Positions 3,267 to 18,883 of a stretch of DNA of 64,000 nucleotides are shown in pieces. The stretch lies in sequence record PQ471516.1, one strand, 5' to 3'. The notes beneath the pieces are model-generated. The model ran no database searches and was not told the origin of the DNA. It saw only the letters and a program-made list of their open reading frames with translations. The position numbers were made by a program, and so were the translations under genes. Position 1 is the first letter of the stretch. Every line of letters begins with the position of its first letter.

Positions 3267-5414
3267 GTGCTAAACATTACAAGTATATCGATGAGAAACT
3301 TCTTCTCCTTTGGGAATGCACCACAAGTAATTGAAATGAATGGTGCTGATATCTCCCTAGTGCTAGGACAAAACAACGATGCAGTTATTGAAGGTGGCGA
3401 CAGTTCTGGTCGCCGTAATGGTGTAGGTAAAAGTGCCATTATACAAGGTTTAGTATATGGTTTGTTTGGCAAAAGTATTGGTAATGATATTAAAATTCCA
3501 AACTTAGTTAATAAAACTAATGCTAAGAACTGTGAAGTAATCGTTGAGTTCGAAAAGGATGGGGTAAATTATAGAGTTGAACGTGGTAGAAGTCCTACTT
3601 ACTTTAACTTTATTACTGTAGGAACTGATAATACAGTTACAGACGAATCAAGGGGTGAAAAGAAAGATACTCAAGAAGATCTAAATGAGATTTTGGGTAT
3701 TTCTCAACTCCTGTTCGAACATATTGTAGTACTAAATGCTAACGTAGAACCATTTTTGGCATTAGGTGCTCAACGTCAACGTGATATGATCGAAGAACTC
3801 CTTGGGATTACACAATTGACTGAAAAAGCTGAACTACTTAAGGATATGAACAAAGAATCCAAGCGTTTAGCAGAACAAGAGAAGTTTAAGAACGAAACAG
3901 TTGCTGCTAGTAATGAACGTATACAGAAAAGTATCGAATCATTGCAGGAACAAGCAAATAACTTCGAAATAGAGAAGTCAAAACGTGTTGAAAGTCTGGA
4001 AAGTGAGATTAGTTTGTATAGTACTGTTAACTTTGAGGATTTGTACAAAGCTGCTGCTCTTAATGAAGAAGCAATTGCTCATAACCTTAATATTGACAAT
4101 CTATCCATCCGAGTACAAGATCTGGCTTCTAAATTCGAGACATATAATGCCGATTTAGAGCGTAACAAAAGTATTCTTGCTCAAAATATCGATAATCTAA
4201 AGAACATTGATATTAATGCGGAGTTAAAGAGTCATGAAGAACTGGAAATGTGGAAACAATTAGATACTATTCTAAAAGAGAACAATAACCAGAAGCGTTT
4301 CAAAGAACAGAAGTTAAATTCATTGAAAGCTAACCTTCAAACTTATAAAACTTCGTTTAGTGCAGAAGATAACAAACGTATTGAGTTGGAAAAGAGTAAA
4401 TGTCCAACGTGTTTGACTACACTTGAACATAATGAACACACAATGTCATTGAAAGCTAAAATTCAAGAGACTATTGATTCATTACATCTGAAAATTGATG
4501 AATGTACTCGTGAAATTGAACAAGTAGAAGGTGAAATTGGTGATATTGAGATCTTTGATATGCCACCTAAGCCTATTACTCATTACAATACGTTGACTGA
4601 AGCACAAATGCATGAACATAAGCTTCAAGAGTTGCAGAAAAAGTATGATGAGGTTCCAATTAATATCTATCAAGAAGAGTTGATGAACTCATATGATACT
4701 TTGAACTCATTAATTCGTAAAGAAGTATCCGAGACATTGACTCAATCAGAAGTAAGAGAGATTGAATTGGCTTATAACTCATTAAAACAACAACTGGAAC
4801 GTGAACTAGCAACGACTAATACTTTTATTAGTCAAATTAACACGCTTACTCAAGATTCACTTGTTGCAATCGATTATTCCGATTATAATAACTTAGATAA
4901 GTTGGCTAATCACCAAGATTTCTTAGTTAAGCTGCTTCTCAATAAAGATTCATATGTTCGTAAACGTATCATTGAACAAAATATCTCATATCTGAACAAC
5001 CGTCTTCAGTACTACATCGAAATGTGTGGTTCAGAGCATAGCGTTGTGTTCCTTAACGATCTAAGCGTTGAGATTGAGAAAAGTGGTCAGTACTTTGACT
5101 ATAAACAATTAAGTCGTGGGGAAAGAACAAGGGTTAACATTGCGTTATCTTGTGCATTCCGTGATACTTATGAGTCTCTATATCAAAGTATTAACATTCT
5201 GATTATCGATGAAATGATTGACCAAGGTCTTGATTCAAGTGGTGTTCTTCGTGTGTGGTCTATCTTCCAAGATATGTCTGCTGTACGTGGTAAAAACGTA
5301 TATGCAATTTCACACCGAGAAGAGTTGCTTTCGAAGACTGAAAAAATCCTTAAGGTAGTAAAAGAATACGGTTTCAGTACTGTTGAATATACTACTCTGG
5401 ATGATGTATTCTAA
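3267..5414 (+). CDS. 46: Recombination ATPase gp46 (Rad50/SbcC-like)
   Basis: Walker A NGVGKS, long coiled coil with CPTC zinc hook, signature LSRGE, Walker B LIIDE, H-loop ISH; GTG start. Confidence 0.95.
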   Translation: MLNITSISMRNFFSFGNAPQVIEMNGADISLVLGQNNDAVIEGGDSSGRRNGVGKSAIIQGLVYGLFGKSIGNDIKIPNLVNKTNAKNCEVIVEFEKDGVNYRVERGRSPTYFNFITVGTDNTVTDESRGEKKDTQEDLNEILGISQLLFEHIVVLNANVEPFLALGAQRQRDMIEELLGITQLTEKAELLKDMNKESKRLAEQEKFKNETVAASNERIQKSIESLQEQANNFEIEKSKRVESLESEISLYSTVNFEDLYKAAALNEEAIAHNLNIDNLSIRVQDLASKFETYNADLERNKSILAQNIDNLKNIDINAELKSHEELEMWKQLDTILKENNNQKRFKEQKLNSLKANLQTYKTSFSAEDNKRIELEKSKCPTCLTTLEHNEHTMSLKAKIQETIDSLHLKIDECTREIEQVEGEIGDIEIFDMPPKPITHYNTLTEAQMHEHKLQELQKKYDEVPINIYQEELMNSYDTLNSLIRKEVSETLTQSEVREIELAYNSLKQQLERELATTNTFISQINTLTQDSLVAIDYSDYNNLDKLANHQDFLVKLLLNKDSYVRKRIIEQNISYLNNRLQYYIEMCGSEHSVVFLNDLSVEIEKSGQYFDYKQLSRGERTRVNIALSCAFRDTYESLYQSINILIIDEMIDQGLDSSGVLRVWSIFQDMSAVRGKNVYAISHREELLSKTEKILKVVKEYGFSTVEYTTLDDVF

Positions 5415-5420
5415 TAACAC

Positions 5421-5446
5421 AAAAGGGAGCCTTAGCTCCCTTTTTT
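5421..5446. terminator. Bidirectional intrinsic terminator
   Basis: aaaa-gggagc-ctta-gctccc-tttttt between convergent genes. Confidence 0.85.
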
Positions 5447-5923
5447 CACATGCAACATATTTAATTTACCTTCCTTGATAAGCTTCCTAGCTTGCTTTAC
5501 ACGAACAGCATTGTTAGCACCAGGGATGATATCATACTCTTCCAGAATAGCGTTCTGTTGGGCTGCTGGGAGCCTTTTAAACTTACCTACATCAACTGCT
5601 AAAGCAGTGTGGTGTATAATCTGTTCCTCTTCAGGGATGCTATTATTTTTCTCTAAATAGTCTGCAAGATTACGCAGTACTTCGTATAGGGGTTTATCAG
5701 TTAAGTGCTTCATGTAGCGATTAAAGCTATTCTGAACCTTTCCTTCCCATGCGTTCACTTCATTCTGGAGTACTTCACGACAGTGTTGATTCTCGAAGTG
5801 ATAGTGATCCAGTACTGGTTTAGTGATAGTTTCTTTGATGATAGGATCTATACCTTTTTGTTTTTTAAGTAATTCATTTCGATAGTTTGCAGCGTCTTTA
5901 CTATCTTTCAATCTTCGTTTCAT
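5432..5923 (-). CDS. 49: Endonuclease VII (gp49)-like Holliday junction resolvase lacking Zn-binding cysteines
   Basis: PVLDHYH...REVL..EVNAWEGK and L.NLADYL align with T4 gp49 HLDHDH...RGLLC..CNAAEG...LENLLTYL. Confidence 0.75.
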   Translation of the reverse strand: MKRRLKDSKDAANYRNELLKKQKGIDPIIKETITKPVLDHYHFENQHCREVLQNEVNAWEGKVQNSFNRYMKHLTDKPLYEVLRNLADYLEKNNSIPEEEQIIHHTALAVDVGKFKRLPAAQQNAILEEYDIIPGANNAVRVKQARKLIKEGKLNMLHVKKGS

Positions 5924-6017
5924 AAATCCCCTCTTAACTAATTCCTATTGAAATATTTATGCGTTAGTTTTTCAGTGCAGGAACTAAGTACTTTTTCATA
6001 AAAAAATCACATAATAC

Positions 6018-6046
6018 TGAGACACTTTTAAAAAATGTGCTATAAT
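6018..6046 (+). promoter_or_regulatory. Promoter TGAGACA-N16-TATAAT driving an ORF-free region
   Basis: Exact match to the window-wide promoter class; TG extended -10. Confidence 0.75.
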
Positions 6047-6500
6047 GTTTATTGTAGTAATGACAATCCTGTTGAATGCAGAAATGCATATAAATTAGAA
6101 CCTGATCCTATCGAAAATGTAGATGGCAGATGAGCAGTTCAACAGTGCGATGAGCAAAAGAAACCCGTCAGATGTGGGCATAGTTTGAACCCCTCACGGC
6201 AATGCGGCTCAATAAAGAACTCCGATAAGATACAGAGAGTTCCTCGATAGACATATAAGGTAAATTCCTTACCAGATTATCTAAGGGAGTTTTTGATTTA
6301 TTTCAAAAACAGCTTGAAGTTTGATTGTATAGACTTTCAAGTGAGTGTCAGGATGTTTAAGACTGACGACCGTTGCATATGACTGCGATAGAGAGAAACA
6401 GAGCAACCCGCTTTCGTTCTTAATTAATTAAGAAATTCGCAATACAATAATTCCGATGCCATCAGCGTCAAGATTAAGAGACTTCATTGTCTCTTTTTTA
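6047..6500 (+). ncRNA. Candidate structured non-coding RNA of about 450 nt, family unknown
   Basis: Bounded by promoter and terminator, no ORF of 60 aa or more inside, dense nested helices (see findings). Confidence 0.6.
6476..6500 (+). terminator. Intrinsic terminator closing the candidate ncRNA
   Basis: aagagac-ttcatt-gtctctt followed by T tract. Confidence 0.75.
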
Positions 6501-6701
6501 TTATCTTCATTCCCCTGCGGGGGGATGAAATATCCTCAACAAATCCCGTCAAGTATTAAATCATTTAAAGTTCTTTATAATTATATTAAAATGAATATGA
6601 GTTACGTCAGTAACGAATATTCTTCATCTAACGAATGAAATGAGTTAGATGAGTTCAATATAATCTTTCTAGTATAATTCAAATCATCATAAATTAGATA
6701 C

Positions 6702-6726
6702 AAAAAAACCAGCAATAGATGCTGGC
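6702..6726 (-). terminator. Intrinsic terminator of the minus-strand baseplate hub genes
   Basis: ccagca/tgctgg stem with A7 on the + strand side. Confidence 0.75.
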
Positions 6727-6737
6727 TTAGTAGTGAG

Positions 6738-6950
6738 TTACTGCTTCCCGTTGAGTTTTTTAATTTTCTTATTAAATGACTTAACTAATAAATTCCTGTC
6801 AATTACTGGCATATTAAGGAGTGTTCCGTAGTCAATATTTTCCATATTCACAGCACACTCCATAAGTGCTTCTTTGATCTCTTTTTTATTCAGTTCTATT
6901 TCCTTCAAAAATTCTTGGATTTCTTCTGGAGTTGACTGGAGAAGCGTCAT
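6738..6950 (-). CDS. Small baseplate hub assembly protein (gp51-like)
   Basis: 70 aa, overlaps gp26-like gene by 4 nt; LLNMP..DR.LL pattern; context. Confidence 0.5.
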   Translation of the reverse strand: MTLLQSTPEEIQEFLKEIELNKKEIKEALMECAVNMENIDYGTLLNMPVIDRNLLVKSFNKKIKKLNGKQ

Positions 6951-7783: not shown

Positions 7784-7858
7784 TTTAGTTTCTCCATGTA
7801 ATTCAAAAAATGTGTTTATAGTATTTATCCTGGTAAATTATCCAAAATGAGGTAAATT

Positions 7859-8395
7859 ATGTTAAAAGATTTTTATAAAAAACATTCCGAGCGTGTAAAA
7901 GCATTCTTTGGAATCTCATTCCTGTGCTTAGTGTTCGCAGCAGGGTTCTTTAGCTATGATTCATATAAAACAGATGAACCACCAGCAAACACTGCTCTTG
8001 AGAAGCTTAAAAGCAAACTACATGAACGTGAGTTGAGTGCTGGTACTCATATGCTACGTGGTAAAGCATACCGCTTCGATTACAGTACTGATAACTTTGA
8101 TAAGAAAGTTTGGGTAATCCTGAACGTGAAGTTCAAAGAAGACAAAGTGTACTTAGGAGACACTTACTCTATTGTACTGTCATATATCGGTACTGATGCA
8201 GATGGTCTTGACTATTATTACAAAGGTCATCATTACGTCAAGGGTATCCCTGAATTACAAAAAGAAGGATATTACCTAGATTATCTGGTTATTCATGACC
8301 CAGCACGTAAGGCAGTGTCAGTTAATACTACCCCAAGTGGGAACCAAACTGGTGTACCAAACACATTTATAGGAACACTAGACCCAGTTTTCTAA
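7859..8395 (+). CDS. Hypothetical protein with N-terminal membrane anchor
   Basis: Hydrophobic stretch aa 15-32; GAGG RBS; followed by terminator. Confidence 0.7.
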   Translation: MLKDFYKKHSERVKAFFGISFLCLVFAAGFFSYDSYKTDEPPANTALEKLKSKLHERELSAGTHMLRGKAYRFDYSTDNFDKKVWVILNVKFKEDKVYLGDTYSIVLSYIGTDADGLDYYYKGHHYVKGIPELQKEGYYLDYLVIHDPARKAVSVNTTPSGNQTGVPNTFIGTLDPVF

Positions 8396-8416
8396 AATAA
8401 TATAACTAAATCCACT

Positions 8417-8452
8417 AAGCCCAAGGGTATATTCTACTCTTGGGCTTTTTTT
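8417..8452 (+). terminator. Intrinsic terminator
   Basis: aagcccaag/cttgggctt stem followed by T tract. Confidence 0.75.
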
Positions 8453-8506
8453 ATTCAAAAAATGTCATAAATATCTTTATACTACAATTTATTAAAAGGG
8501 ATTGTT

Positions 8507-10738
8507 ATGGCTATCAATACGAGTGATTACCTTCTTCAGCAGTTGGTCAATCAGAATAAAGATAATAACGATAGTTTAACTGCAATAAGAGAACTATTGG
8601 CTGACAACTTAAAACAGAATTCTAAGAAAAAGACAGGCTCCAGTAGTCCAGGTTCCCCAAGACCAGGTGGTTCCGGTGGACGTGGTGGTTCAGGAAGTGG
8701 TTCCGGTAACAAAAACACTTTCGGAAAAATGTTTAAATCACTATCATCTGAAGTTTCTAACGTAAGTAAAACAATGATGAACAGCAGTGCGAACGTAAGC
8801 ACTGTAGTGAACTCATTAGGTATGAGTGCATCATCAGCAGCGGGAGCATTAACAATGATTCCTGGCCCGATTGGTGTAGCTGCAACTGCATTTAAAATGG
8901 TAGCCGACGTAGGGATGGCAGTATACAACGTCCTGAACGCACAATTAGAAGTCTACACTAAAATTAACAGTGCAGGTGTTGCATTGGCTGAAGGTTATGG
9001 TTCAGTACTGAAAGGTGCTGGTGCGTCAATGATGAGTGTTGACAACTTTGCTGCGGCATTACAAACACACAGTGCTGTTGTTGCACAGTTGGATGGGGTT
9101 TATGGGGATGGTGTATCATCATTTGGTAAATTATTGGGAAGTGTTCAATTGGCACAAAACCAATTAGGCTTATATGGTGTATCACAACAAACTCTAACTG
9201 ATTTAACTGCACGTAATATTAAATTCCAAAAACAATACGGTGGGGCTGAAATGATTCGTAATATGAATCAGGCTCAAAGTAGTGAACAGTTTATTACTAC
9301 ATTAACTAAATTCAGTAAAAGTATAGGTGAATCAGTAGATTCATTATTGAATAAAACAAAGAACTTGGATAAATCTATTGATACTCGTTCTATGATCATT
9401 GCACTTAAAAACTATTCTCATTTACCAAAAGAAACTGCTGCTCTTACATCAAAAGCTTTTAACGAAGCTGCATCTTCAATGGGTGATATGGGCAGTGATT
9501 ATTTGCGTTTGATTTCTCATAGACTATCAATTGGTGGTATTCCTGATGACCTATTTTCTCCAGTACTGAATGAGGTTGCGGATCTTGGTGAGTATATGGT
9601 TAAGTCTGGGATTACAGATGCTAATGTAATTCGCCAGAAACAAATCGAGTACGTTCGTGCTAACCGTGAAACAATTGAACAAGATATTCTTTATCAACGT
9701 AGTATCGGTAATGAACAAGCTGCCCTATTTGAAAGTCAATTACTAGACCTAGAAGCAGCAGCGAATGACCCTAAAAATAGCCCAGCAGATAAACTAACAC
9801 AATTCACAAACCGCTTTAATATGTGGATTAGTAAAACATTCTCTGAACCATTTAATAAACTCTATGCTGATACACAGAATTCAGTAGTTGATTACCTTTC
9901 TGGTATTGCAGATAGAACTGATGGTGCATGGGAATTCCTATGGGAATTTGCTAAGGATGGTTTCGGATTAATCCCAATTGCTAAAGATGCAATAGAATAT
10001 GTTGATGGCCTAGGTGCAGAATTCTCAACTTGGTTGGATAATTTGGGTTCCGATTTAATGGGTGGCTCATATGATAAGATTTCTAATGCGTTTAACTCTT
10101 TCATTGATAACCTAGTTGATTTGCCTGGTAAACTTTGGGATTCAGTTTCTGGTTGGTTTGGTGGCGGTGAAAAAGAAAAACCTAAAACACAAGAACCATC
10201 TGTGGATGTTACCAATAAGTCCCAGTATATAACCACCGAACAGACAACACTAAATAAGATTACAGATTCAGTTATGGGGTTGTTTGATTCGATATATACA
10301 CCATTCAAACAGTGGAATGACGCAAGAACATGGACACCACCTAAGCCAACAGATAAAGAAGCAATGTGGCGTATGGGTGATCTAATCTCTAGTAATAATG
10401 GTAAAAAACCAATATCTACTCCACGTATTGAGAAAACCGAAAACGTGGTTCCAGATGTAGTACTGGAAAGAAAAATGTTTGATAAATCAGCTTGGAAGCC
10501 CGGTGAAGCACCTTATCAAGCCGAAAAGCCAATTGATTTTGAGTCATTTGTCAATGATCGCAAAGACCTAAATATAACAAACAGGGCAGACGTACCGCAA
10601 CTACAAGCTATGGATGAACAGTCAGAGATTTTGAAACGCTTGGCTGATGCATCAGAAGCATCACTGTCAGCCATTCAACAAACAAATAACTTCTTGAGAA
10701 CTATCTCTGAAAACACTCAAGGTGAAAGAAACAGTTAA
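8507..10738 (+). CDS. Tape-measure-like / gp29-like tail protein
   Basis: 743 aa helical Ala/Gly/Ser-rich protein with GS-rich N-terminal linker and W/F..L heptads; late promoter ATAAATA 8467-8473. Confidence 0.5.
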   Translation: MAINTSDYLLQQLVNQNKDNNDSLTAIRELLADNLKQNSKKKTGSSSPGSPRPGGSGGRGGSGSGSGNKNTFGKMFKSLSSEVSNVSKTMMNSSANVSTVVNSLGMSASSAAGALTMIPGPIGVAATAFKMVADVGMAVYNVLNAQLEVYTKINSAGVALAEGYGSVLKGAGASMMSVDNFAAALQTHSAVVAQLDGVYGDGVSSFGKLLGSVQLAQNQLGLYGVSQQTLTDLTARNIKFQKQYGGAEMIRNMNQAQSSEQFITTLTKFSKSIGESVDSLLNKTKNLDKSIDTRSMIIALKNYSHLPKETAALTSKAFNEAASSMGDMGSDYLRLISHRLSIGGIPDDLFSPVLNEVADLGEYMVKSGITDANVIRQKQIEYVRANRETIEQDILYQRSIGNEQAALFESQLLDLEAAANDPKNSPADKLTQFTNRFNMWISKTFSEPFNKLYADTQNSVVDYLSGIADRTDGAWEFLWEFAKDGFGLIPIAKDAIEYVDGLGAEFSTWLDNLGSDLMGGSYDKISNAFNSFIDNLVDLPGKLWDSVSGWFGGGEKEKPKTQEPSVDVTNKSQYITTEQTTLNKITDSVMGLFDSIYTPFKQWNDARTWTPPKPTDKEAMWRMGDLISSNNGKKPISTPRIEKTENVVPDVVLERKMFDKSAWKPGEAPYQAEKPIDFESFVNDRKDLNITNRADVPQLQAMDEQSEILKRLADASEASLSAIQQTNNFLRTISENTQGERNS

Positions 10739-10748
10739 GGACATAATA

Positions 10749-12485
10749 ATGAGTTGGAAACGACATATGACAGTTGGGAGATCGAAACTTTCGAAAACCC
10801 CAAATCAGTCCAGTAATAGCAATAAAACTACAGGTTCAAAGTCAAATTTCGCTTCGTACCTACCAATAGTTTATAATGGTCTGGCTAACCGTACTGATCG
10901 TTATAGTCAGTACGACCAAATGGACCAAGATCCTGAAATTAGAACTGCTCTAAACATTATAGCAGACTTCTGTACACAAAGTACTGAGGATTTTGGTCTA
11001 CCTTACAAAATTAAATATAAAGACGATATCGGTGATACCGAAGTCACTACCATTGAAGACCGTCTTGATGCTTGGACAGAACAAAACGACTTCAAAACCA
11101 GAATGTATGAAATTGTTCGTGGCCTTTTAAAATACGGCGACCAATTCTTTATTCGTGACCCTGAAACATATGACTGGTACTGGGTAAGCCCACAAAACGT
11201 TGAACAAGTATTTGTCAACGAGGCAACAGGCAAAACCCCAGTTATCTATTATATTCGTGACGTATCATTGAATCTAAAAGATAAAGTCTTTAGTAACCTT
11301 CAAGTTGGTTTTGACAAAACAGCATATCCTGGTGGCATCCCATCTACTCTAGGTGGCGGCGGTGCAGTAGCAGCAGGTGGTGCTTCCGGCTTCACTAACC
11401 AAGGAAATACCTCCGACCCATTCAGTACTAACGGTCGTATGGATGTTATCCCAGTTGGTGCAGAACACGTCATTCACCTAACACTAAATACAGGACAAGA
11501 TGGCGTTTGGCCTTTTGGTTCTAGTATACTCGAAGATGTCTTTAAAGTATATAAACAAAAAGAGCTACTCGAAGATAGTATCATTATCTATCGTGTTCAG
11601 CGTGCTCCAGAACGTCGCGTATTTAAAATTGACTGCGGTGATATGCAAACACACCAAGCTATGGCTTATGTAGAACGCTTCAAAAATGAAATACACCAAC
11701 GCCGTATACCTTCTAATAAAGGTGGCAGTACTTCACTAATGGATGCAGCATATAACCCACTAAGTATTCTAGAAGATTACTTTTTCCCACAAACTTCAGA
11801 AGGTCGTGGTTCAGATGTTCAAACCCTACCTGGTGGTGATAACTTAGGTCAGATTGATGACTTACGTTACTTTAATAATAAATTAGTTCGTGGCCTACAA
11901 ATCCCAGCATCATACCTTCCACAAGGTCCAGATGATGGCGGTGTTTCAATGTTTGGTGACGGTGCAACACAAGCAATGGCAAGTGAACTTCGTTTTAATA
12001 ACCAATGTATGCGTTATCAACGTTTAGTACAAAAAGTATTTGATAGTGAATTTAAACGTTTTATGGTTAAAAATGGATACAACATTAGTACTTCTTCTTT
12101 TGAAGTAATTATGAATCCACCAATGAACCTAGCATCTTACCGTAAAGCAGAACTAGATGCAAAACTAATTAACACTTACATGCCATTGAATGATCTACCT
12201 TATATGTCTAAACAGACTATTCTTAAGAAAATGGGCTTCTCCCAAGCTGATATTGTTGAAAACGAACAATTGTGGCTACAAGAAAACCCTCAAGATGGTA
12301 GTAATCAACCGACTTCAGAAGACGATGCAGCAGGTTTACAATCAGTTGGTATCGACGCTCCAAATGACCCAGGAATGGATTTAGGGTTGGATGACGAAGG
12401 AAACTTGGAAAGTGCTGATGCAGAATACCAAGAACAACAAGGAAGTGCCTCTTTTGACCCGAATAATTTAGGCGATTCTTTTTAA
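10749..12485 (+). CDS. 20: Portal protein gp20
   Basis: LEDSIIIYRVQRAPERRVFKIDCG, EDYFFP..EGRGSDVQTLPGGDNLGQIDDLRYF are gp20 hallmarks; start moved to ATG 10749. Confidence 0.95.
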   Translation: MSWKRHMTVGRSKLSKTPNQSSNSNKTTGSKSNFASYLPIVYNGLANRTDRYSQYDQMDQDPEIRTALNIIADFCTQSTEDFGLPYKIKYKDDIGDTEVTTIEDRLDAWTEQNDFKTRMYEIVRGLLKYGDQFFIRDPETYDWYWVSPQNVEQVFVNEATGKTPVIYYIRDVSLNLKDKVFSNLQVGFDKTAYPGGIPSTLGGGGAVAAGGASGFTNQGNTSDPFSTNGRMDVIPVGAEHVIHLTLNTGQDGVWPFGSSILEDVFKVYKQKELLEDSIIIYRVQRAPERRVFKIDCGDMQTHQAMAYVERFKNEIHQRRIPSNKGGSTSLMDAAYNPLSILEDYFFPQTSEGRGSDVQTLPGGDNLGQIDDLRYFNNKLVRGLQIPASYLPQGPDDGGVSMFGDGATQAMASELRFNNQCMRYQRLVQKVFDSEFKRFMVKNGYNISTSSFEVIMNPPMNLASYRKAELDAKLINTYMPLNDLPYMSKQTILKKMGFSQADIVENEQLWLQENPQDGSNQPTSEDDAAGLQSVGIDAPNDPGMDLGLDDEGNLESADAEYQEQQGSASFDPNNLGDSF

Positions 12486-12559
12486 TAATAAATAACAATG
12501 TATAAAAATGAGGGTGATTAATTCATCCTCATTATAATGCATTATTCAAAGGAGACGAA

Positions 12560-12787
12560 ATGTTAAAGGACATCTTTGAATCTAGCAGTGATTCTATGTA
12601 CGACCCTGAAGATGATCAGAACGTTTATAAAATTACTGATTCTCGTAAACCAAAATTAACATTACAAGTACTGAACAATTTAAGAAAGTACCGTGAGTTT
12701 AAGGCACATGAAGAACAACGACGCAAAGCAGTTGTTGCAGTTGTTTATGCCCCAGCACCCGCTGGAGATGGTTCTGGATTAATGTAA
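12560..12787 (+). CDS. Small prohead core protein (gp67/68 position)
   Basis: Between portal and protease; GGAG RBS; IFE-S protease-type site. Confidence 0.55.
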   Translation: MLKDIFESSSDSMYDPEDDQNVYKITDSRKPKLTLQVLNNLRKYREFKAHEEQRRKAVVAVVYAPAPAGDGSGLM

Positions 12788-12887
12788 ACAAAAATCGCAC
12801 TTTTTAAAGCGTTTAAAAATGGCGAAATTTTTCAGTACTAAATAATATCATACTTTATACGAATATAATATATCTATGGAGGATATA

Positions 12888-13733
12888 ATGGCGAATTTAA
12901 AACTACTACAAGAAGCAATTGAAGCTTTCGCAAACGGCGAGCAAGATGTTGCAGATAAAAAAATGCGTAAGTACTTTGTTGAGCAAGCTCAAGAAATTAA
13001 CAAAGAACTAGAAGAAAGCATGGAAGACGAAGAAGAAATTGAAGTCAAGGATGAAGAAAAACTTGATGAAGATTTTGATGTACAACCTGATGCTGGCCTA
13101 AACTCTGAAATCGAATTCGCTCTCGGTGAAGAAGATGAAAGTGCTGAAGCTGAAGTCGAAGAATTTGGTTCTGAAGACGATGGCGAAGTTGAAGTTGGTG
13201 CTGAAGAAGAAGTTGAAGGTGAAGAAGGTGGTGTTCCTTCCGAAGATCAATGGGAATCCATTCAAGATGCTTTCCGTGGCCTACAAGACATGTTTGATGA
13301 AATCGGTGGCGATGTAGACGTTGACCTAGACTCTGAAGAAGAAGTTGAAGGAGATGTTGAAGAATTCGGTGCTGATGGTGAAGAAGCAGAAGACGAATTT
13401 AGTGATGTTCAATTCGGTGAAGAAAAAGTTGGTGAATCTTTCAAACTAAAACCAGTAGCTGGTGTTGATAAGAAAGAAAAAGCTGGTGCTAACACCAAGT
13501 CCCCAGTGGCTGGTCAAGCAAAATCTCCAGTAGCTGGCGTAGAACCAGTTAAATTCGCTAAAGCAACCGAAAAACAGGTTGATTACGATTTTGAGAACGA
13601 AGATGCAATGTCCCATAAAGACGAAGATCTAGGTAAAAATGCTCGTGGTGAAATGAAAGACGTTAAAGCACCTAAAGTTGCCGCTGCTGCGAAAAGTCGC
13701 TCAGTACTACCAAAATCTCAACCAAAAATCTAA
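12888..13733 (+). CDS. Highly acidic prohead core protein
   Basis: Glu/Asp-rich, several (L/V)xE-S/A sites, late promoter ctaaataatatc 12838-12849, GGAGG RBS. Confidence 0.65.
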   Translation: MANLKLLQEAIEAFANGEQDVADKKMRKYFVEQAQEINKELEESMEDEEEIEVKDEEKLDEDFDVQPDAGLNSEIEFALGEEDESAEAEVEEFGSEDDGEVEVGAEEEVEGEEGGVPSEDQWESIQDAFRGLQDMFDEIGGDVDVDLDSEEEVEGDVEEFGADGEEAEDEFSDVQFGEEKVGESFKLKPVAGVDKKEKAGANTKSPVAGQAKSPVAGVEPVKFAKATEKQVDYDFENEDAMSHKDEDLGKNARGEMKDVKAPKVAAAAKSRSVLPKSQPKI

Positions 13734-13764
13734 CAATAAATAACAGAAAGAAGGAGATCATTAT

Positions 13765-14385
13765 ATGAGTATGATTCGTGAATGGTCTTCATTCAATGAT
13801 TCTAATATTGTTCTGGAACATCGTGATAACGGATTTGGCGGTCGTGATTGCTACCTACGTGGTATTGCAATTCAGGCCGACCAAAGAAACTTGAACGAGA
13901 GAATTTACCCTTTATCTGAAATTACGAAGGCCGTAAATAATATGGGTCAACGTTTAGCTAAAGGGGAAAGCATTCTAGTAGAATGTGACCATCCAGAAAC
14001 ATTAACCATTAACCTAGACCGTGTAGCTGCAATGATTACAAAAGTCTGGATGGAAGGTGCTAATGGTATGGCAGAAATCAAATTGCTTGATACTGCTCAT
14101 GGTCAAAATATTCGTAAAATGCTAGAGGCTGGCGTAAAACTTGGTGTCAGTTCACGCGGTTCCGGTAACGTAGATTATAATGGAATAGTTTCTGATTTTG
14201 AAATTATCACTATCGATATTGTTGCTCAACCTAGTGCTCCAGAGGCATACCCAACTGCGGTATTTGAATCTCTAATGAGCAAGTACGGATCACCTTGTAA
14301 TAGTCCTAAAAAAATCAATGAATCTAAAACAGTAAATAATGTAGATTCTGAAATTTACGATTTTTTCAAGAAATTAAAAGGTTAA
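13765..14385 (+). CDS. 21: Prohead protease gp21
   Basis: N.N.RIYP, E.DHP, LGVSSRGSG, TIDIVAQPSAP.AYP. Confidence 0.93.
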   Translation: MSMIREWSSFNDSNIVLEHRDNGFGGRDCYLRGIAIQADQRNLNERIYPLSEITKAVNNMGQRLAKGESILVECDHPETLTINLDRVAAMITKVWMEGANGMAEIKLLDTAHGQNIRKMLEAGVKLGVSSRGSGNVDYNGIVSDFEIITIDIVAQPSAPEAYPTAVFESLMSKYGSPCNSPKKINESKTVNNVDSEIYDFFKKLKG

Positions 14386-14396
14386 CATTTTAAAAA

Positions 14397-14429
14397 TATA
14401 AATATCTGTATGTTGAAGTACAGATATTT
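14397..14429 (+). promoter_or_regulatory. Late promoter TATAAATA overlapped by an 11-bp inverted repeat
   Basis: tataaata 14397-14404; aaatatctgta 14400-14410 / tacagatattt 14419-14429. Confidence 0.65.
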
Positions 14430-14452
14430 CAGTACTTAAAGGAGAGAACAGG

Positions 14453-15568
14453 ATGTCTAAATTAGAAAAGCTTCTAAAAGAATCATCACTTTCTGATGAG
14501 GCAAAACAGCTAATTCAGGAAGCATGGAATGAAGAAAAAAATACACTTGCCGCAGAAATGCGTGAAGAAATGAAAGGTCGATACAAACAAGATTTGTCCG
14601 AGCTAACCGAAGGTCTAAATACTATGGTTACTCAAGTTATCGCTGAAGAAATGGGTGCAGTATATGATGAGAAAAAACGTCTTGTAGAAGACCGTGTAAC
14701 TCTTCGTAAAACCCTAGGTAATTTCTCTCAGTTCGCAAACTCTGTATTGGCTGAAGAAGTCAAACAACTACGTAAAGAACGTAAACATCTAAGAGAAAGT
14801 ATGGGCAAATTTGTTAATTTCTCAAACGGTATCTTAGCTGAAGAACTAAAAGAATTCCACGTGGAAAAACGTCAACTAGTAGAAACTCGCGTAAAACTAC
14901 TTGCTGAAGGTTCCCGTCAAATTGCTGAAGCACGTAACAACTTCATCAAACGTACCTCTGAAAGTGCTGCTAAATACATTGCAGAAACAACTCAGAAGAA
15001 CCTATACGCTTTGAAACAAGATCTTGTTGAAGCAAAACAAAATATGTTTGGTCGTAAAATTTTCGAAGCATTTGCTCAAGAATTCCATATCAAACAATTT
15101 AACGAGAATTCACTTCTACGTTCCCTAACTGAATCAGTTAAGTCTAAAGAAGACGAAATTGCTCAAGTTAAATCTGAACTAAATGAATCTGTTGCTGCTG
15201 TTAAAGCTGCGAAAACCAAACTCCGTATTATGGAAGATACTCAAACCCGTAATGCAATTATGTCCGAGTTGGTGAAGCCACTAAATACTCAGCAAAAACA
15301 AATTATGGAATCCCTTCTAGCTACTTCTCCTACAGAAAAGCTTAAAGACGATTTCAGCAAGTACCATAAGTCAGTACTTAACGGTACTAAAGTAAATGAA
15401 TCTGCTACCTCTCGTCAAGCAGTTCAGTCTTCAGCTAAGAAAACTCTTGCCGAAGGTAAAGTAATCACTGGCAACCGTCAGGCTATTGTTGAAAGCGAAG
15501 AAATGACCGCTGACGATATGGCATTCCTAAAAGAACTCGATGTTCTTTCTGGTATCAATAAAAAATAA
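14453..15568 (+). CDS. 22: Prohead scaffold protein gp22
   Basis: Coiled coil between protease and capsid; GRKIFEAF motif; many LxE-S sites. Confidence 0.85.
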   Translation: MSKLEKLLKESSLSDEAKQLIQEAWNEEKNTLAAEMREEMKGRYKQDLSELTEGLNTMVTQVIAEEMGAVYDEKKRLVEDRVTLRKTLGNFSQFANSVLAEEVKQLRKERKHLRESMGKFVNFSNGILAEELKEFHVEKRQLVETRVKLLAEGSRQIAEARNNFIKRTSESAAKYIAETTQKNLYALKQDLVEAKQNMFGRKIFEAFAQEFHIKQFNENSLLRSLTESVKSKEDEIAQVKSELNESVAAVKAAKTKLRIMEDTQTRNAIMSELVKPLNTQQKQIMESLLATSPTEKLKDDFSKYHKSVLNGTKVNESATSRQAVQSSAKKTLAEGKVITGNRQAIVESEEMTADDMAFLKELDVLSGINKK

Positions 15569-15606
15569 ACATTTTAAAGCATTTTAATAATCAATCTTTT
15601 CAGTTC

Positions 15607-15619
15607 TATAAATAATATC
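15607..15619 (+). promoter_or_regulatory. Strong late promoter TATAAATAATATC
   Basis: Directly upstream of major capsid gene; same extension at 12838, 28096 and 28159. Confidence 0.75.
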
Positions 15620-15659
15620 ATACTGAAAAACGAATATAACATCTTTAAGGAGATATACA

Positions 15660-16835
15660 ATGTCACAACTACTAAATGAATCCAAATGGGTAGCAGTTAA
15701 AGAGAAACTAGTTGAAGGTCTACAAGGTACTCGTAAGTCCGTAATGGAAACCGTACTTGATAACCATCGTAAACTAATGCTTAACGAATCTGCTACTTCT
15801 GGTGCAACCACCGCTGGTAACATCGCTACTCTAAACAAAGTGATTCTACCAATTATGCGTCGTGTAATGCCTACCGTAATCGCTAACGAAATCATCGGTG
15901 TTCAGCCAATGACTGGCCCAGTTGGTCAGATCCACACCCTACGTGTTCAATATGCTGACAACGCTCCTGGTGTTATCGCTGGTGAAGAAATGCTTTCTCC
16001 ATACAAAATCGCTAAAGCGTATTCTGGTGAACTAAACGCTGACAACAGCAACCCACAAGCTGCTCCTACTAGCCAACTAGAAGGTACTATGGGTCGTCGC
16101 GTTAACATCCGTATCCTACGTGAAACTGTTGAAGCGAAATCTCGTCGTCTATCTGCACGTTGGACTGTTGAATCTGCACAAGATGCTCAATCCCAACATG
16201 GTATCGATGTTGAAGCTGAACTAATGGCTGCTATCGCTCAAGAAGTTACCGTTGAAATCGACCAAGAGCTACTAAGCCGTCTACGTGCACTACCTGGTGC
16301 TGCTGCTGTAACTTATGACCAATCTAAAGTTACTGGTGTTGCTACCTTCGTTGGTGACGAACACGCCGCTCTAGCTACCCTAATCAACCGTCAAGCGAAC
16401 GAAGTTGCTCGTCGTACCAAACGTGGTGCTGCGAACTGGGCTGTTGTTTCTCCAACCGCTCTAACCATTCTACAGTCTGCAACTACTTCTAGTTTTGCAC
16501 GTACTACTGAAGGTACTTTCGAAGCTCCAACTAACGTTAAATTTGTTGGTACTCTAAACAGCACCATGCGTATTTTTGTAGACACGTATGCCAGTGATGT
16601 CGAAGATATTCTAATTGGTTATAAAGGTAATGCTGAAACTGATGCTGGTGTATTCTACTGCCCATACATCCCACTAATGGCATCTGGTACTGTAATGGAC
16701 CCTAACACTGGAGAACTCGTTACGACCTTCTTGACACGTTATGGCTACGTTCAACTCACTGACTCAACCAGTTCTTTGGGAAATGCTGCGGATTACTATT
16801 CTAAGATCGCAATTAAAAACGTTACTTTCATGTAA
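15660..16835 (+). CDS. 23: Major capsid protein gp23
   Basis: RRVMP.VIANEIIGVQPMTGP.G.I, AKSRRLSARWT.E.AQD, FYCPYIPL; extreme codon bias. Confidence 0.96.
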   Translation: MSQLLNESKWVAVKEKLVEGLQGTRKSVMETVLDNHRKLMLNESATSGATTAGNIATLNKVILPIMRRVMPTVIANEIIGVQPMTGPVGQIHTLRVQYADNAPGVIAGEEMLSPYKIAKAYSGELNADNSNPQAAPTSQLEGTMGRRVNIRILRETVEAKSRRLSARWTVESAQDAQSQHGIDVEAELMAAIAQEVTVEIDQELLSRLRALPGAAAVTYDQSKVTGVATFVGDEHAALATLINRQANEVARRTKRGAANWAVVSPTALTILQSATTSSFARTTEGTFEAPTNVKFVGTLNSTMRIFVDTYASDVEDILIGYKGNAETDAGVFYCPYIPLMASGTVMDPNTGELVTTFLTRYGYVQLTDSTSSLGNAADYYSKIAIKNVTFM

Positions 16836-16880
16836 TAAAAAGAAAATTTATAGAATTTTATATTAAAATTGAAAATTTAT

Positions 16881-16920
16881 AAGGGACTCGCTTGACGAGT
16901 CCCTTTTTTTGTTTTATAAT
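16881..16920 (+). terminator. Capsid-gene terminator that also contains a sigma70 promoter (TTGACG-N17-TATAAT) for the endonuclease
   Basis: aagggactcg/cgagtccctt plus T tract; TTGACG 16892-16897, TATAAT 16915-16920. Confidence 0.8.
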
Positions 16921-16943
16921 ACGCGTATATTATAAATGAAGAG

Positions 16944-18170
16944 ATGAAAATGATTACATATCAAGAATTGAATGAAAAATGGATGAGAACACATCCAAAT
17001 CAAAAAGAACCTATATTTTATTTGAATGGTATTGAAAAAGAAATTAATGATAATAATTTAAATTATATCTTCATAGGTTTTAATATAAATTGTGTATCTG
17101 AATTTAATGGTGCAAAAACTAAATTAATTTTAAAATGTCCAAATCCAAAACATAAACAGTTTGAAAACTGCACCTATAATAATTTCACAAAACTTAATGA
17201 TGGTCGTCGATGTCCAGAATGTAGTAAAGAAATGGTTGCATCTTTACATCGAAATGATACAGAAACATTTAAAATTAATTCTTCTCATGTTCATAATAAT
17301 TTTTATGATTATAGTAAAACAACATATGGTAACAATGCACATGAAAAAGTAATAGTTACGTGTCCTATTCATGGTGATTTTAAAATTCGTCCAGCTAAAC
17401 ATTATAATGGTGCTCAAGGATGTTCTAAATGTGCAGAAGAAAAGCAATTATTAGATTCTAATGATGTAATTGAACGTATTAATATTATACATGATAATCA
17501 TTTTGAATTCACAAATTTTGAATATAAAGGTATTCATAAAAAATCTAAGATAATATGCAGCAGAACTGGACGAGAATATAAAACTACTCCTAATACATTA
17601 TTGCAAGGATATGGATGTAGATTTTGTCATCAACGTTCTGAACATACATTTGAATCATTTATTGATATGGCGAATGTGAAACATAATAATAAGTACTATT
17701 ATCATTTAGCAGAATTGCAATATGACGGGTTGAAAAAATATGTAGATGTATTGTGTTCAGAACATGGAATTTTCACAGTACTACCAACTAACCACATTCA
17801 TGGTAAAGCTACTGGATGTCCGAAATGTGCTGAATATGGGTATAATAGCAGTAAAGCTGGACATTTTTACATTCAAAAACTATCAAATAACAAAAATGAA
17901 ATAGTTGCGTATAAGTATGGAATTACTAAACGATTATCTGACCGTATCATTGAGCAACAGAATACTTCAATGTATAAGCATGAATATATATACCATGAAT
18001 ATTTTGAAGATGGTGAAATTCCACCTAAACTTGAAAGAATTGTTGAAGAAAATATCATTTGTTCATACTTATCAAAAGATGAGCTTGGTAATGGGTATAC
18101 TGAAACATATGAGCCTAAATATCATGAGAAAGTTTTAAATTTAATAAAAACTTTTTTAGATAAAAACTAA
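16944..18170 (+). mobile_element. Free-standing homing endonuclease gene: CPxHG zinc-ribbon repeats plus C-terminal GIY-YIG-like domain
   Basis: Repeats H.N.YDYS...V..CP.HG.F...P..H..G..GC..C; C-terminal HFYIQK...YKYGIT.R...RI; visibly more AT-rich with different codon use. Confidence 0.75.
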
Positions 18171-18224
18171 AAGGAGTTGACAAGGATGTTAACTGTATAC
18201 TTATTTCGCAAAGAAGAGTACTTA

Positions 18225-18536
18225 ATGAGTCAGTACTCAAATATTGAGATTAATGTTCCATACGGCACGTATGTTGCTTATGATGAAGAAAGTGAAACAT
18301 TGCATTACTATGATGACAAATTAGATTATAGTACTGAAAAGTTTATTGAAGATGTACTAACCTGTAGTACTGAAGAAATGGTTTATGAAATCTATCTCCA
18401 GAAGTACAGAGAGCGTATGTCCAAGGTACATGCAGACGCACCAGTACTGAACATTAACCAGACTCCATCTGAATTCCAACCCACAAACCCATTCCAGCGT
18501 TTAATAGATGCTGGGGTAAATTTCCGAATTAGTTAG
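18225..18536 (+). CDS. Hypothetical protein
   Basis: ORF track 18177-18536; ATG 18225 is the more likely start. Confidence 0.6.
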   Translation: MSQYSNIEINVPYGTYVAYDEESETLHYYDDKLDYSTEKFIEDVLTCSTEEMVYEIYLQKYRERMSKVHADAPVLNINQTPSEFQPTNPFQRLIDAGVNFRIS

Positions 18537-18559
18537 ATGATAAATATCTTCATAATAAA

Positions 18560-18883
18560 ATGGAGATATTTTCTATGTCACAAATATGTTATGTAATAAC
18601 TAATGCTGCTTGGCCTGAGTATGTAAAGATTGGATTTACATCTAAATCAGAAATGACAGAAAGATTACGAACATACCAAACTGCAACCCCATTCCGTGAT
18701 TTTGAAGTGTATCATGAGGTTAAGTTCCCTGATGCTAGGGTTGCAGAGAAAGAGATTCATAAAAGACTAAAGCAGATGAATGCTACACGTCAGCCTAATA
18801 CTGAGTGGTTCAAGATGCCTAAGAAGCTGGCAGCTAATATAGTTGACTCTGTACTTGACGATATGGAGAACGATTTACTTTAG
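18560..18883 (+). CDS. Stand-alone T5orf172/GIY-YIG-family protein
   Basis: CYVI.N....YVKIGFT....ERL..YQT..P..F.V....AEKEIH..L......EWF; late-type gataaata 18538-18545. Confidence 0.8.
   Translation: MEIFSMSQICYVITNAAWPEYVKIGFTSKSEMTERLRTYQTATPFRDFEVYHEVKFPDARVAEKEIHKRLKQMNATRQPNTEWFKMPKKLAANIVDSVLDDMENDLL

Follow-up and report, generated by a model that had tools for sequence, protein, structure and literature searches.

A gene for an autonomously folding non-coding RNA of approximately 500 nt, matching no described RNA family, appears to be encoded at positions 6047-6553 (+ strand) of the analysed window, a 64,000 nt stretch of sequence record PQ471516.1 derived from the Escherichia jumbo phage Turkey5 (Asteriusvirus). 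The conserved + strand fold of this element is established by comparative sequence data. No expression data are available for any member of the family, and the size and abundance of the transcript and the position of its ends are inferred. The RNA gene, taken jointly with the mode of action proposed below, is considered only somewhat more likely than not. The element occupies an ORF-free gap (5924-6737, on the basis of an ORF scan), which is bordered by the Endo VII gene (5432-5923, - strand) and a 70-aa ORF (6738-6950, - strand). It represents copy A of four paralogs, and its extent is supported by paralog alignment, nhmmer matches with E-values of 1e-70 to 1e-146, and covariation. The GC content of the element is 0.365-0.42, compared to 0.275-0.285 for the flanking intergenic DNA. 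Two small hypothetical CDS are annotated across the locus in the Turkey5 record, and part of the element is labelled as a repeat_region in the UE-S1 record. Member lengths vary by 1-2 nt within the conserved blocks of the family, with the indels among members disrupting every reading frame, and no terminal repeats could be found around the element.

Folding of the single sequence is only mildly unusual (z = -2.4 for the + strand and -3.25 for the - strand) and is therefore indecisive, so that the matter is decided by the comparative data. Across thirty aligned homologs, 87.3 % of the 2819 pair cells in a 97-pair model with three pseudoknots are paired, versus 39-47 % in slid controls, and 66 pairs show compensatory (both-side) changes, versus 23-33 in the same controls. 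The covariation score of 0.399 was reached by none of 500 shuffles and compares to values of at most 0.136 in the controls. Most of the helices were recovered independently by RNAalifold. Among 63 unique members, helices P3, P4, P5, P11 and P13 are 100 % paired, followed by the PK2 pseudoknot (99.5 %) and P12 (99.4 %). G-U pairs are far more common than A-C mismatches in well-aligned helices (64:1 in P9b, 23:1 in P12 and 29:0 in P13), indicating that the RNA is read from the + strand and that a single transcript of the + strand is under constraint. For PK1 and PK2, covariation does not distinguish pairing within one molecule from pairing between molecules.

The + strand RNA comprises approximately sixteen conserved helices and three pseudoknots, arranged around nearly invariant junction strands. 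The 5'-terminal hairpin attgt/acaat (6051-6067), discerned in the sequence itself, is lineage-specific and not found in all members, with copy C incorporating a different 5' hairpin and a U7 run at this location. The adjacent 5' pseudoknot region (6069-6148) includes P1, a variable hairpin (6077-6089), P2 and P3. Covariation is observed in 7/8 pairs of P1 (CUGUUGAA, 6069-6076, with UUCAACAG, 6138-6145), and both-side changes likewise in 7/8 pairs of the P2 hairpin (6102-6129), which carries the conserved loop GAAAAUGUA. The 3' strand of P1 is enclosed by P3 (GCA, 6134-6136, with UGC, 6146-6148), of which six helix variants occur. Three helices, P4 (6151-6155/6207-6211; four covarying pairs), P5 (6165-6168/6196-6199) and P5b (6176-6178/6190-6192), are found in the P4/P5 region (6151-6211), together with the conserved strands AAGAAACCCG and ACGGCAAUGCGGC. 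The P6 hairpin GAACUC/GAGUUC (6217-6242) shows compensatory changes in 6/6 pairs, with 99.4 % of its cells paired. Invariant alignment columns characterise the region that follows (6243-6289), which consists of the nearly invariant junction GAUAGACAUAUAAGG, P7 (6256-6260/6267-6271; 95 % paired) and the invariant AAGGGAG (6283-6289). A pairing between CCU (6101-6103) and GGG (6285-6287) was rejected, with only one-sided changes observed and a clash with the covarying P2a.

The foot pairs of the P8 hairpin (6290-6310) have undergone 14-15 both-side changes (RNAalifold, columns 326-329/399-402), and most other copies carry an inserted extra domain of 60-90 nt at this site. The loop of the P9/P9b hairpin (6313-6341) contributes AUUGUAU (6324-6330) to PK2, where it pairs with AUACAAU (6442-6448); 6/7 of these pairs covary, giving eleven sequence variants. 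P10 (GUCAG/CUGAC, 6347-6367) is 98 % paired and covaries in 5/5 pairs. The 3' core (6372-6441) incorporates an H-type pseudoknot, in which P11 (GUUGC, 6372-6376, with GCAAC, 6403-6407) crosses P13 (6391-6395/6411-6415), as well as P12 (UGCGA, 6384-6388, with UCGCA, 6437-6441; sixteen variants) and the variable hairpin P14 (6417-6434), a lineage-specific palindrome. Further downstream, a weak hairpin GAUGC/GCGUC (P15; 3-5 bp depending on the member) occurs with the conserved motif CGUCAAG (6455-6472), which recurs at 6547-6553, with both occurrences changing in parallel. A fixed pairing partner for the tail or the CGUCAAG motifs could not be upheld, given that P15 has just 3-5 bp and that the second and third motifs vary in parallel and not in a complementary manner. 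The closing helix GAC/GUC proposed by RNAalifold is invariant and thus offers no covariation by which to judge it.

A promoter (6018-6046, + strand) precedes the element, and is made up of a -35-like TGAGAC (6018-6023), a 14-nt spacer and the extended -10 TGCTATAAT (6038-6046), from which transcription is inferred as likely to start near 6053. Each copy has a strong promoter of the host type. Nearly all family members, also those located on bacterial islands, are preceded by TGAAAC, TGAGAC or TGGGAC, which is followed by a spacer and TGnTATAAT. The criterion for a sigma-70 promoter, namely TGnTATAAT and a -35-like hexamer at a suitable distance, conserved in homologs, is thereby met. An automatic promoter scan scored the extended -10 in 55/63 members, although for 13-15 island-clade members it chose TGGTATAAT, which lies within the RNA. 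Two of the latter have a TATACT promoter upstream, with the extended -10 present in L137 and absent in L119. Genome-wide, sites of this promoter class number approximately fifty on the + strand and two on the - strand.

An intrinsic terminator (6476-6500, + strand; hairpin 6476-6495), with a 7-bp stem AAGAGAC/GTCTCTT, a 6-nt loop and U6, is located within the conserved unit and satisfies the criterion of a GC-containing hairpin that precedes a U run and whose stem covaries among homologs. It appears as an optional insert, found at the same place in at least 16/59 members (about a third), with differing stem sequences (GAGAC.., GUACAC.., AGUACC.. and GAUCC..), and is absent from copies C and D of Turkey5. 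Conservation extends approximately 55 nt beyond it, to 6553. The 3' module (6506-6553, + strand) consists of the 10-bp hairpin P16 (UUCAUUCCCC, 6506-6515, with GGGGGAUGAA, 6520-6529; loop UGCG), which varies mostly via G-U intermediates, and the conserved tail AUAUCCUCAACAAAUCCCGUCAAG. The module is kept in all paralogs and island copies, and in copies A and B it is located 3' of the canonical terminator. The conserved hairpin and tail are not accounted for by a simple discrete RNA with its 3' end at 6500, which counts against the explanation preferred here. No terminator was found within 200 nt 3' of the tail in any member; the RNA is therefore possibly the 5' part of a longer mRNA in copies lacking the internal terminator. 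Another 10-bp hairpin, with loop GAAUGAAAUGA (6623-6653, + strand), is located downstream of the tail. Using a strict pattern, hairpins with the loop GAA(C/U)G...(A/G)UGA were observed 35-100 nt past the tail in 18/51 phage and island copies, and the hairpin at 6623-6653 may conceivably form a further 3' part of read-through transcripts.

The initial annotation, made from sequence alone, described a stretch of approximately 450 nt without an ORF, richer in GC than other intergenic DNA and equipped with a promoter and terminator. These features are present as described, but its placement of the end at the terminator (6500) failed, as the conserved unit continues to 6553. Nine of the ten helices it proposed were right. 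Covariation backs those at 6069-6076/6138-6145, 6151-6155/6207-6211, 6217-6222/6237-6242, 6256-6271, 6289-6310 (helix base), 6313-6341 and 6347-6367, while the hairpin at 6051-6067, tgca-GAAA-tgca and the palindrome at 6417-6434 are real hairpins, but lineage-specific. The helix at 6372-6389 was wrong and is replaced by P11 and P12. The supposed GCAA loop belongs to the conserved junction ACGGCAAUGCGGC and is not a tetraloop, and GNRA loops did not hold up as a conserved feature.

The Turkey5 genome encodes four paralogs (A-D), approximately 70 % identical to one another and identically oriented, at record positions of approximately 54, 109, 192 and 305 kb. No further paralog occurs within the 64-kb window, the other copies being located elsewhere in the genome. 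Most of 72 related phage records contain between four and five copies apiece, and syntenic paralog groups (clades) are common to several jumbo-phage genera. The RNA family is thus multi-copy and ancient, and has been kept across a clade of giant enterobacterial phages. Genes downstream of copies B, C and D are co-oriented, with no terminator in between, but the neighbours of these three copies are mutually unrelated, while convergent genes are located 3' of copy A and of four island copies. Islands of E. coli, Serratia, Enterobacter and further Enterobacterales also harbour intact copies, which retain their own promoter and adjoin a gene for an integrase or recombinase. Together with the integrase genes, repressor genes border the island RNA, at a site usually occupied by defence cargo. 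No jumbo-phage relatives of the island neighbour genes could be found by tblastn against phages, and no recognisable replication genes occur beside the island copies. A shared protein partner was rejected on these grounds, with the flanking genes of the paralogs being unrelated and the island neighbours lacking jumbo-phage relatives. The family has moved more than once between jumbo phages and small integrative islands of the Enterobacterales, and this exchange between lytic phages and integrative elements suggests a portable function.

Comparison against Rfam 15 (4227 models) gave no match at gathering thresholds in the whole 64-kb window, and even at E<=10 none was obtained inside 6047-6580, with only noise for an E. 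coli island copy. No tRNA or tmRNA genes were predicted in the window by ARAGORN. Neither the phage copy nor the island copy matched Intron_gpI, Intron_gpII or related models at E<=10, and the criterion of insertion inside a host gene is not met, the four copies lying between genes; the element is thus not an intron. RNase P and small self-cleaving ribozyme models likewise gave no match. The conserved sequence strings yielded nothing in a full-text literature search, and no description of the family was found in the literature searched on jumbo phages, 121Q, RaK2 and ncRNA. A 2023 catalogue of viral candidate structured RNAs, with motifs averaging 67 nt, does not mention these phages in its text, the supplementary tables being excluded from this search (PMC10690425). 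The family is therefore new with respect to Rfam 15 and the literature searched. The undescribed, independently transcribed and tertiary-folded jumbo-phage RNA postulated in the initial annotation is thus supported by covariation with three pseudoknots, conserved promoters and the excess of G-U over A-C. Its failure to find a known RNA counterpart also held, with no Rfam 15 family, tRNA or tmRNA matched, and the homolog search and Rfam comparison by which it proposed to be checked gave compensatory changes among thirty aligned homologs and no match, respectively. It had not seen that the RNA extends beyond jumbo phages to the Enterobacterales islands, nor that the element forms a multi-copy family, with four paralogs here and four to five in most relatives. 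None of the functions it listed (scaffold, sponge, ribozyme or origin primer) is settled.

The closest resemblance in kind is to ROOL and GOLLD, large 'ornate' RNAs associated with bacteria and phages, for which multimers have been observed by cryo-EM (bioRxiv 10.1101/2024.12.08.627333). Like these, the Turkey5 RNA is several hundred nt in length, has many helices and pseudoknots and no known function, and occurs on phages or prophage-like elements without a linked protein gene, a criterion that is met as a likeness and not as membership. Its loop-strand pairings are equally compatible with intermolecular or intramolecular contact. However, neither Rfam model was matched in sequence or structure, and while ROOL and GOLLD are known from Firmicutes and from rumen and lake samples, the Turkey5-type RNA comes from Enterobacterales and the jumbo phages infecting them, with four to five diverged paralogs per genome and no tRNA genes nearby in the 64-kb window. 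Four ORF-free loci of 236-619 nt (the 'lncRNAs' ncRNA001-004), all on the + strand, were detected by RNA-seq in the distantly related jumbo phage PA5oct, two of which are highly expressed through the whole infection (Environ Microbiol 2020, PMC7318152). These provide a precedent, but not expression evidence for the Turkey5 family. No homology to ncRNA002 or ncRNA004 was found with nhmmer, and although some motifs look alike by eye, kinship was rejected after a covariance model of 6149-6289 matched none of the four.

The RNA is likely to act in trans, alone or with a host factor, although the mechanism is inferred. Trans action is favoured because the flanking genes of the copies are unrelated; the points that set it above cis action are the unrelated neighbours of B, C and D, the convergent genes faced by A and the island copies, and the absence of jumbo-phage relatives among the island neighbours. 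Host RNA polymerase would make the RNA early and abundantly, and the RNA would act as a compact particle, with the conserved junctions as the surface at which it binds or acts on a partner encoded elsewhere, most probably a conserved component of the host. The RNA may instead bind itself, forming a homo-oligomer through the loop-strand pairings, but no oligomerisation data exist. The trans-acting RNA would be of use to mobile elements, either when taking over the host or in conflict between phage and host or between phage and island. In the roughly one third of copies with the internal terminator, two forms are predicted, namely a short form and a long form that results from read-through and includes the 3' hairpin and tail. 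As a whole, the RNA gene and trans-acting particle are considered only somewhat more likely than not; a role as a trans-acting binder or decoy is argued by exclusion, with no partner identified, and the dispersed copies, in one orientation around the genome, would also fit replication origins.

This origin reading, where each copy marks an origin and the 3' part of a structured transcript primes replication via an RNA-DNA hybrid, is nevertheless considered unlikely. ColE1 RNA II is approximately 550 nt long, and is defined by a persistent R-loop, RNase H processing and the start of DNA synthesis, and the T4 oriF and oriG transcripts prime leading-strand synthesis via a persistent RNA-DNA hybrid. 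The Turkey5 RNA resembles these in being promoter-driven, non-coding, of similar length and with a G-run near its 3' end, and the several dispersed copies recall the multiple origins of T4. In support are the four to five copies, which are identically oriented and individually equipped with a promoter, the conservation past the terminator of the tail and of a 3' hairpin containing a G6 run, the AT-rich DNA 3' of the element, and the possibility that a jumbo-phage origin could be copied by an island living as a parasite of the phage. However, there is no homology to either system. A folded RNA particle is suggested by the three pseudoknots and the invariant junctions, and the fold is far more elaborate than those described for T4 origins, whose transcripts are not known to need one of this kind. 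The island copies lack recognisable replication genes, and cumulative GC skew, albeit a weak test, has no inflection at the copies and tracks gene orientation only. A further unlikely alternative is a cis-acting leader, be it an antitermination RNA, attenuator or riboswitch, controlling read-through of the internal terminator. The HK022 put RNA, a processive antitermination RNA, is located directly downstream of an early promoter and causes a terminator to be read through, and the present RNA likewise directly follows a strong promoter and precedes a terminator. In about a third of members this terminator is inside the conserved unit with conserved sequence beyond it, copies B, C and D precede co-oriented genes without an intervening terminator, and some copies have a hairpin and U7 between the promoter and P1. 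Against this, copy A and the four island copies precede convergent genes, and there is therefore nothing co-oriented to regulate at these loci. The genes downstream of B, C and D are unrelated, no Rfam cis-regulatory family was matched, and at approximately 500 nt the RNA far exceeds known antitermination RNAs or riboswitches, being approximately seven times larger than put.

A ribozyme, with a catalytic core formed by the invariant junction strands and performing cleavage, ligation or another reaction, overlaps with the preferred explanation as a mode of trans action, but is improbable as such and its catalysis would be inferred. Its size, pseudoknots and nearly invariant unpaired strands (GAUAGACAUAUAAGG, AAGGGAG, CGACCG, AAGAAACCCG and ACGGCAAUGCGGC) resemble the conservation of large ribozymes. 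However, models of group I/II introns, RNase P and small self-cleaving ribozymes are unmatched, the element is not inserted in a gene, and no candidate substrate or cleavage site is identifiable from sequence. Least probable is the absence of an RNA gene altogether, with the locus consisting of short ORFs that escaped annotation or of a repeated DNA element, be it a site of recombination or binding or the remnant of a mobile element. The repetition of the element in the genome, the two hypothetical CDS in the Turkey5 record and the repeat_region in UE-S1 are compatible with this reading. It is contradicted by compensatory changes that maintain helices and long-range pseudoknots, the toleration of G-U but not A-C, the disruption of every reading frame by indels, the lack of terminal repeats and the synteny of the paralogs across genera.

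A bolder reading of the trans-acting RNA, which is possible but no more than that, is of a self-sufficient molecular weapon, a compact and possibly self-assembling RNA particle that giant phages and chromosomal islands exchange. On the phage side, four to five genes would supply the RNA in bulk, in order to neutralise a conserved machine or defence of the host, or to re-programme it, while on the island side a mimic would protect the cell from such phages, or allow the island to exploit them. If true, a defined role in the conflict between phage, host and island would be assigned to a large structured RNA for the first time. The present analysis also corrects current annotations, in which the locus is either left blank or covered by spurious small ORFs. 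Large structured RNAs with conserved tertiary pairings are rare, and nearly all of those that have been explained (the ribosome, RNase P, introns, tmRNA and riboswitch-like giants) revealed basic biology. The present family is carried by E. coli phages amenable to growth on laboratory strains, offers abundant natural sequence variation for structure work, and has four to five paralogs per genome which can be read as natural mutagenesis. It provides a tractable entry to the function of orphan 'ornate' RNAs, and to the share of RNA, relative to protein, in the biology of jumbo phages.

The window is identical in sequence to Escherichia phage Turkey5 (PQ471516.1; 351 kb), its positions being those of the record minus 186,000. 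Turkey5 belongs to the 121Q/PBECO4-like (Asteriusvirus) jumbo phages within the RaK2-like group. The RNA gene (6047-6553, plus strand) lies within an ORF-free gap of 814 bp (5924-6737), bordered by the minus-strand Endo VII gene (5432-5923) and a minus-strand 70-aa ORF (6738-6950) which precedes a baseplate-hub-like gene. A plus-strand promoter, recognised by sequence and comprising TGAGAC (6018-6023), a 14-nt spacer and the extended -10 element TGCTATAAT (6038-6046), and a plus-strand terminator with a 7-bp hairpin and U run (6476-6500) were both found where the initial annotation, which proposed a novel structured non-coding RNA at 6047-6500, had placed them. Its claims that the stretch is GC-richer than other intergenic DNA and free of ORFs also held, with a GC content of 0.365-0.42 within the element vs 0.275-0.285 in the intergenic sequence around it, and overlapping ORFs of 41 aa at most. 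Two small hypothetical CDSs over the locus in the Turkey5 GenBank record (5964-6089, minus strand; 6525-6638, plus strand) are likely to be spurious; other phage records have no CDS or different ones here, and that of UE-S1 has a repeat_region feature over part of the locus. Single-sequence folding is only modestly better than that of shuffled sequences (z = -2.4 on the plus and -3.25 on the minus strand). The single sequence therefore proves nothing, and the decisive evidence is comparative.

BLAST comparison of the 454-nt query against phage genomes matched 72 phage records, at identities from 100 % down to about 66 %, with the hosts Escherichia, Salmonella, Klebsiella, Erwinia, Serratia, Yersinia, Cronobacter, Pectobacterium and 'Xanthomonas'. 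Most of the listed records have four to five matching places, and those of the RaK2/K64-1 group at most two. While no further copy was found inside the 64-kb window, the remainder of the Turkey5 genome incorporates three (record 54030-54510, which is copy C, 108802-109350 and 304989-305449; together copies B, C and D, with the window locus as copy A), all on the same strand with about 70 % identity and each in its own ORF-free gap. In the paralog alignment, near-identical blocks alternate with hairpins whose arms differ complementarily. Homology extends to 6553, about 55 nt past the terminator, which copies C and D lack altogether, and the proposed end of the element at 6500 thus failed. Exact-pattern scans of IMG/VR (two), GTDB genomes and metagenomes, filtered with nhmmer and supplemented with six GenBank orthologs, yielded sixty-three distinct full-length members. 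RaK2-type phages encode a reduced, divergent version (606-1133 of L108, the Klebsiella phage RaK2 locus), in which the 5' and 3' parts are recognisable and the P5-P7 region is remodelled (covariance model E = 8e-4).

Stacked, covarying column pairs were first sought blind and then formally counted on a MAFFT alignment of 30 sequences (A1); both steps support a model of 97 pairs in sixteen helices. Standard pairs occupy 87.3 % of 2819 cells, vs 39-47 % in slid controls with the 3' partners moved by 1-3 columns, while both-side changes occur in 66 pairs (23-33 in controls), 398 cells are compensated (50-88) and the covariation score is 0.399 (≤0.136); none of 500 column shuffles reached the observed values. 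The compensatory changes, whose absence would have counted against the initial annotation, are thus present. Across all 63 members, P3, P4, P5, P11 and P13 are 100 % paired, PK2 99.5 % (11 sequence variants), P12 99.4 % (16 variants) and P10 98.3 %. RNAalifold, which was blind to the model, recovered P2-P9, P12-P14 and P16, with 45/71 pairs compensated. Three crossing pairings are included, all on the plus strand: the 3-bp hairpin P3 (6134-6136/6146-6148) supplies its loop to P1 (6069-6076/6138-6145), PK2 joins the P9 loop (6324-6330) to 6442-6448, and the loop of P13 (6391-6395/6411-6415) takes part in P11 (6372-6376/6403-6407), which creates a classical H-type pseudoknot. The helices are linked by almost invariant strands (GAAAAUGUA, AAGAAACCCG, ACGGCAAUGCGGC, AUAAAG, GAUAGACAUAUAAGG, AAGGGAG, CGACCG and CAACCCGCUU). 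Nine of the ten helices originally proposed held; that at 6372-6389 was rejected, each arm having another partner elsewhere in the RNA. The proposed GAAA loop held only in part, being confined to the lineage of this copy, and the 'GCAA loop' failed, this being a junction strand.

In the well-aligned helices, G-U vastly outnumbers A-C (P9b, 64:1; P12, 23:1; P13, 29:0; P10, 9:0), and the constraint therefore bears on the plus strand in single-stranded form, as a rightward transcript. No conserved reading frame was found among the aligned members, in which conserved blocks vary in length by one or two nucleotides and hairpin insertions are of arbitrary length.

Nearly all members share an upstream architecture of a -35-like TGAAAC, TGAGAC or TGGGAC, a spacer and TGnTATAAT, and two island copies checked by eye (loci L119 and L137) retain TGAAAT/TGAAAC and a TATACT -10. 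The pattern T(G/T)RRA(N)-N12-16-TGnTAYAAT occurs about 50 times on the plus strand of the whole Turkey5 genome and twice on the minus strand, and thus represents a real class of host-polymerase promoters; early, strong transcription of the RNA may be inferred from this class, but is not shown. Copy C and the CBB_a-type copies have a hairpin and U7 directly between the promoter and P1 (about 3960-4010 of the copy C locus L004; record about 53960-54010), possibly a 5'-terminal stabilising hairpin or an attenuator. A canonical terminator lies between the CGUCA(A/G) motif and the P16 hairpin in at least 16/59 members, with stems that differ by lineage; the remaining members lack this internal terminator, and none was found within 200 nt past the tail in any member. 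The 3' module (plus strand), a hairpin at 6506-6529 with a 10-bp stem and UGCG loop and a tail to 6553 ending in CCCGUCAAG, is kept both with and without the preceding terminator. Its retention beyond the terminator is what a simple 'discrete 450-nt RNA' chiefly leaves unexplained, and suggests short and read-through forms, or regulated termination. The CGUCA(A/G) motif occurs three times in the RNA (6166-6172, 6466-6472 and 6547-6553), and its second and third copies shift in parallel among lineages rather than complementarily (CGUCAA vs CGUCAG; UUGUCAG twice in one UViG; CUUCAAG twice in RaK2). Hairpins with the loop GAA(C/U)G..(A/G)UGA recur 35-100 nt past the tail in phage and island copies, that of copy A (6623-6653, plus strand) having 10 bp (ttcatctaac/gttagatgag) and the loop GAATGAAATGA; a smaller hairpin, gttac-gtca-gtaac, lies ahead of it at 6601-6614.

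No match to any Rfam 15 family, tRNA or tmRNA was obtained, and no description was found in the full-text literature searched, conserved strings included. ROOL and GOLLD are the nearest RNAs of a similar kind, but a test of membership in either family was negative. Four 'lncRNAs' defined by RNA-seq in the distant relative PA5oct (PMC7318152) provide a precedent for abundant ORF-free transcripts in the same phage group, but are not detectably homologous. Fragments of the family might be among the short candidate viral RNA motifs catalogued in 2023 (PMC10690425), although the text of that catalogue does not mention these phages. The family thus shows no detectable relation to any RNA family yet described. 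The comparative evidence robustly establishes it as a real, undescribed family of multi-pseudoknot RNAs of roughly 500 nt, which occurs in several copies in RaK2-like jumbo phages and is also present in enterobacterial islands. The initial claim of an undescribed jumbo-phage RNA thus held, with a range wider than jumbo phages.

An intact copy is present in 2/5,426 complete E. coli genomes. That of E. coli LR-29-1 (NZ_AP027515.1) belongs to a 10.8-kb island inserted between ffs and ybaA (7849-18645 of locus L116), which encodes, from one end, an IS3-split integrase, hypothetical genes and the RNA gene, followed by iteron-like repeats, PDC-M45 and a resolvase. The repeats (TATCGATCGTT) lie at about 12990-13060, while PDC-M45 is a PADLOC candidate defence system (DuOB, DUF488 and mSLOG-DUF4326). 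This RNA gene has its own TGTGATATAAT promoter, the 3' module and, by eye, a terminator-like hairpin and U run in the usual position, below the threshold of the terminator scan. Chromosomes or MAGs of Buttiauxella, Silvania, Enterobacter chinensis, Serratia and other Enterobacterales likewise contain full-length copies, which adjoin a tyrosine integrase or large serine recombinase and are matched by a covariance model of 6149-6289 (E 1e-16 to 1e-23). Four chromosomal loci (L119, L128, L140 and L122) share a module of recombinase, RNA gene and convergent cI/LexA-like repressor gene, with a Ner-like gene and a 286-aa membrane protein after the repressor in three of the four 8-kb loci (not L122) and a DUF1311-like protein additionally in L119 and L128. 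This module may constitute a small inducible element or satellite. In the maximum-likelihood tree, phage paralogs group in clades common to several genera; the duplications are therefore old, and their products have been kept. The bacterial copies branch at two or three separate points at least, that of the E. coli island having as its sister one paralog of Serratia phage BF and Yersinia phage Yen9-04, and a large Enterobacteriaceae clade being nested among copies of XaC1 and a 349-kb metagenomic phage. Jumbo phages and islands have therefore exchanged the RNA more than once, with the full fold kept.

The genes beside copies B, C and D are unrelated to each other, convergent genes lie opposite copy A and the island copies, and no jumbo-phage relatives of the island neighbour genes were found. 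These observations speak against obligate regulation in cis and against a dedicated protein partner encoded alongside, and a cis-acting antitermination or attenuation leader is accordingly unlikely. An origin-primer RNA could draw on the dispersed copies, the 3' module kept past the terminator and the G-run, but no recognisable replication genes accompany the island copies, and GC skew, which merely tracks gene orientation in the Turkey5 genome, is uninformative as an origin test; this explanation is likewise improbable. A ribozyme would overlap with a trans-acting reading and is also doubtful. That a DNA repeat or small ORFs account for the locus is the least credible proposal, and is to be set beside the plus-strand constraint and the missing reading frame.

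For the family, the evidence shows a complex single-stranded fold under conservation, conserved host-type promoters, several paralogs that have been retained, and horizontal exchange, while function is inferred. The lack of any shared gene nearby favours a trans-acting RNA particle, which would work with a conserved host component or alone. The PK1 and PK2 loop-strand pairings differ among paralogs and, by analogy with ROOL and GOLLD assemblies, could be intermolecular as readily as intramolecular. On balance, a trans-acting folded RNA, which may serve as a binder, decoy, scaffold or self-assembling particle, is narrowly preferred.
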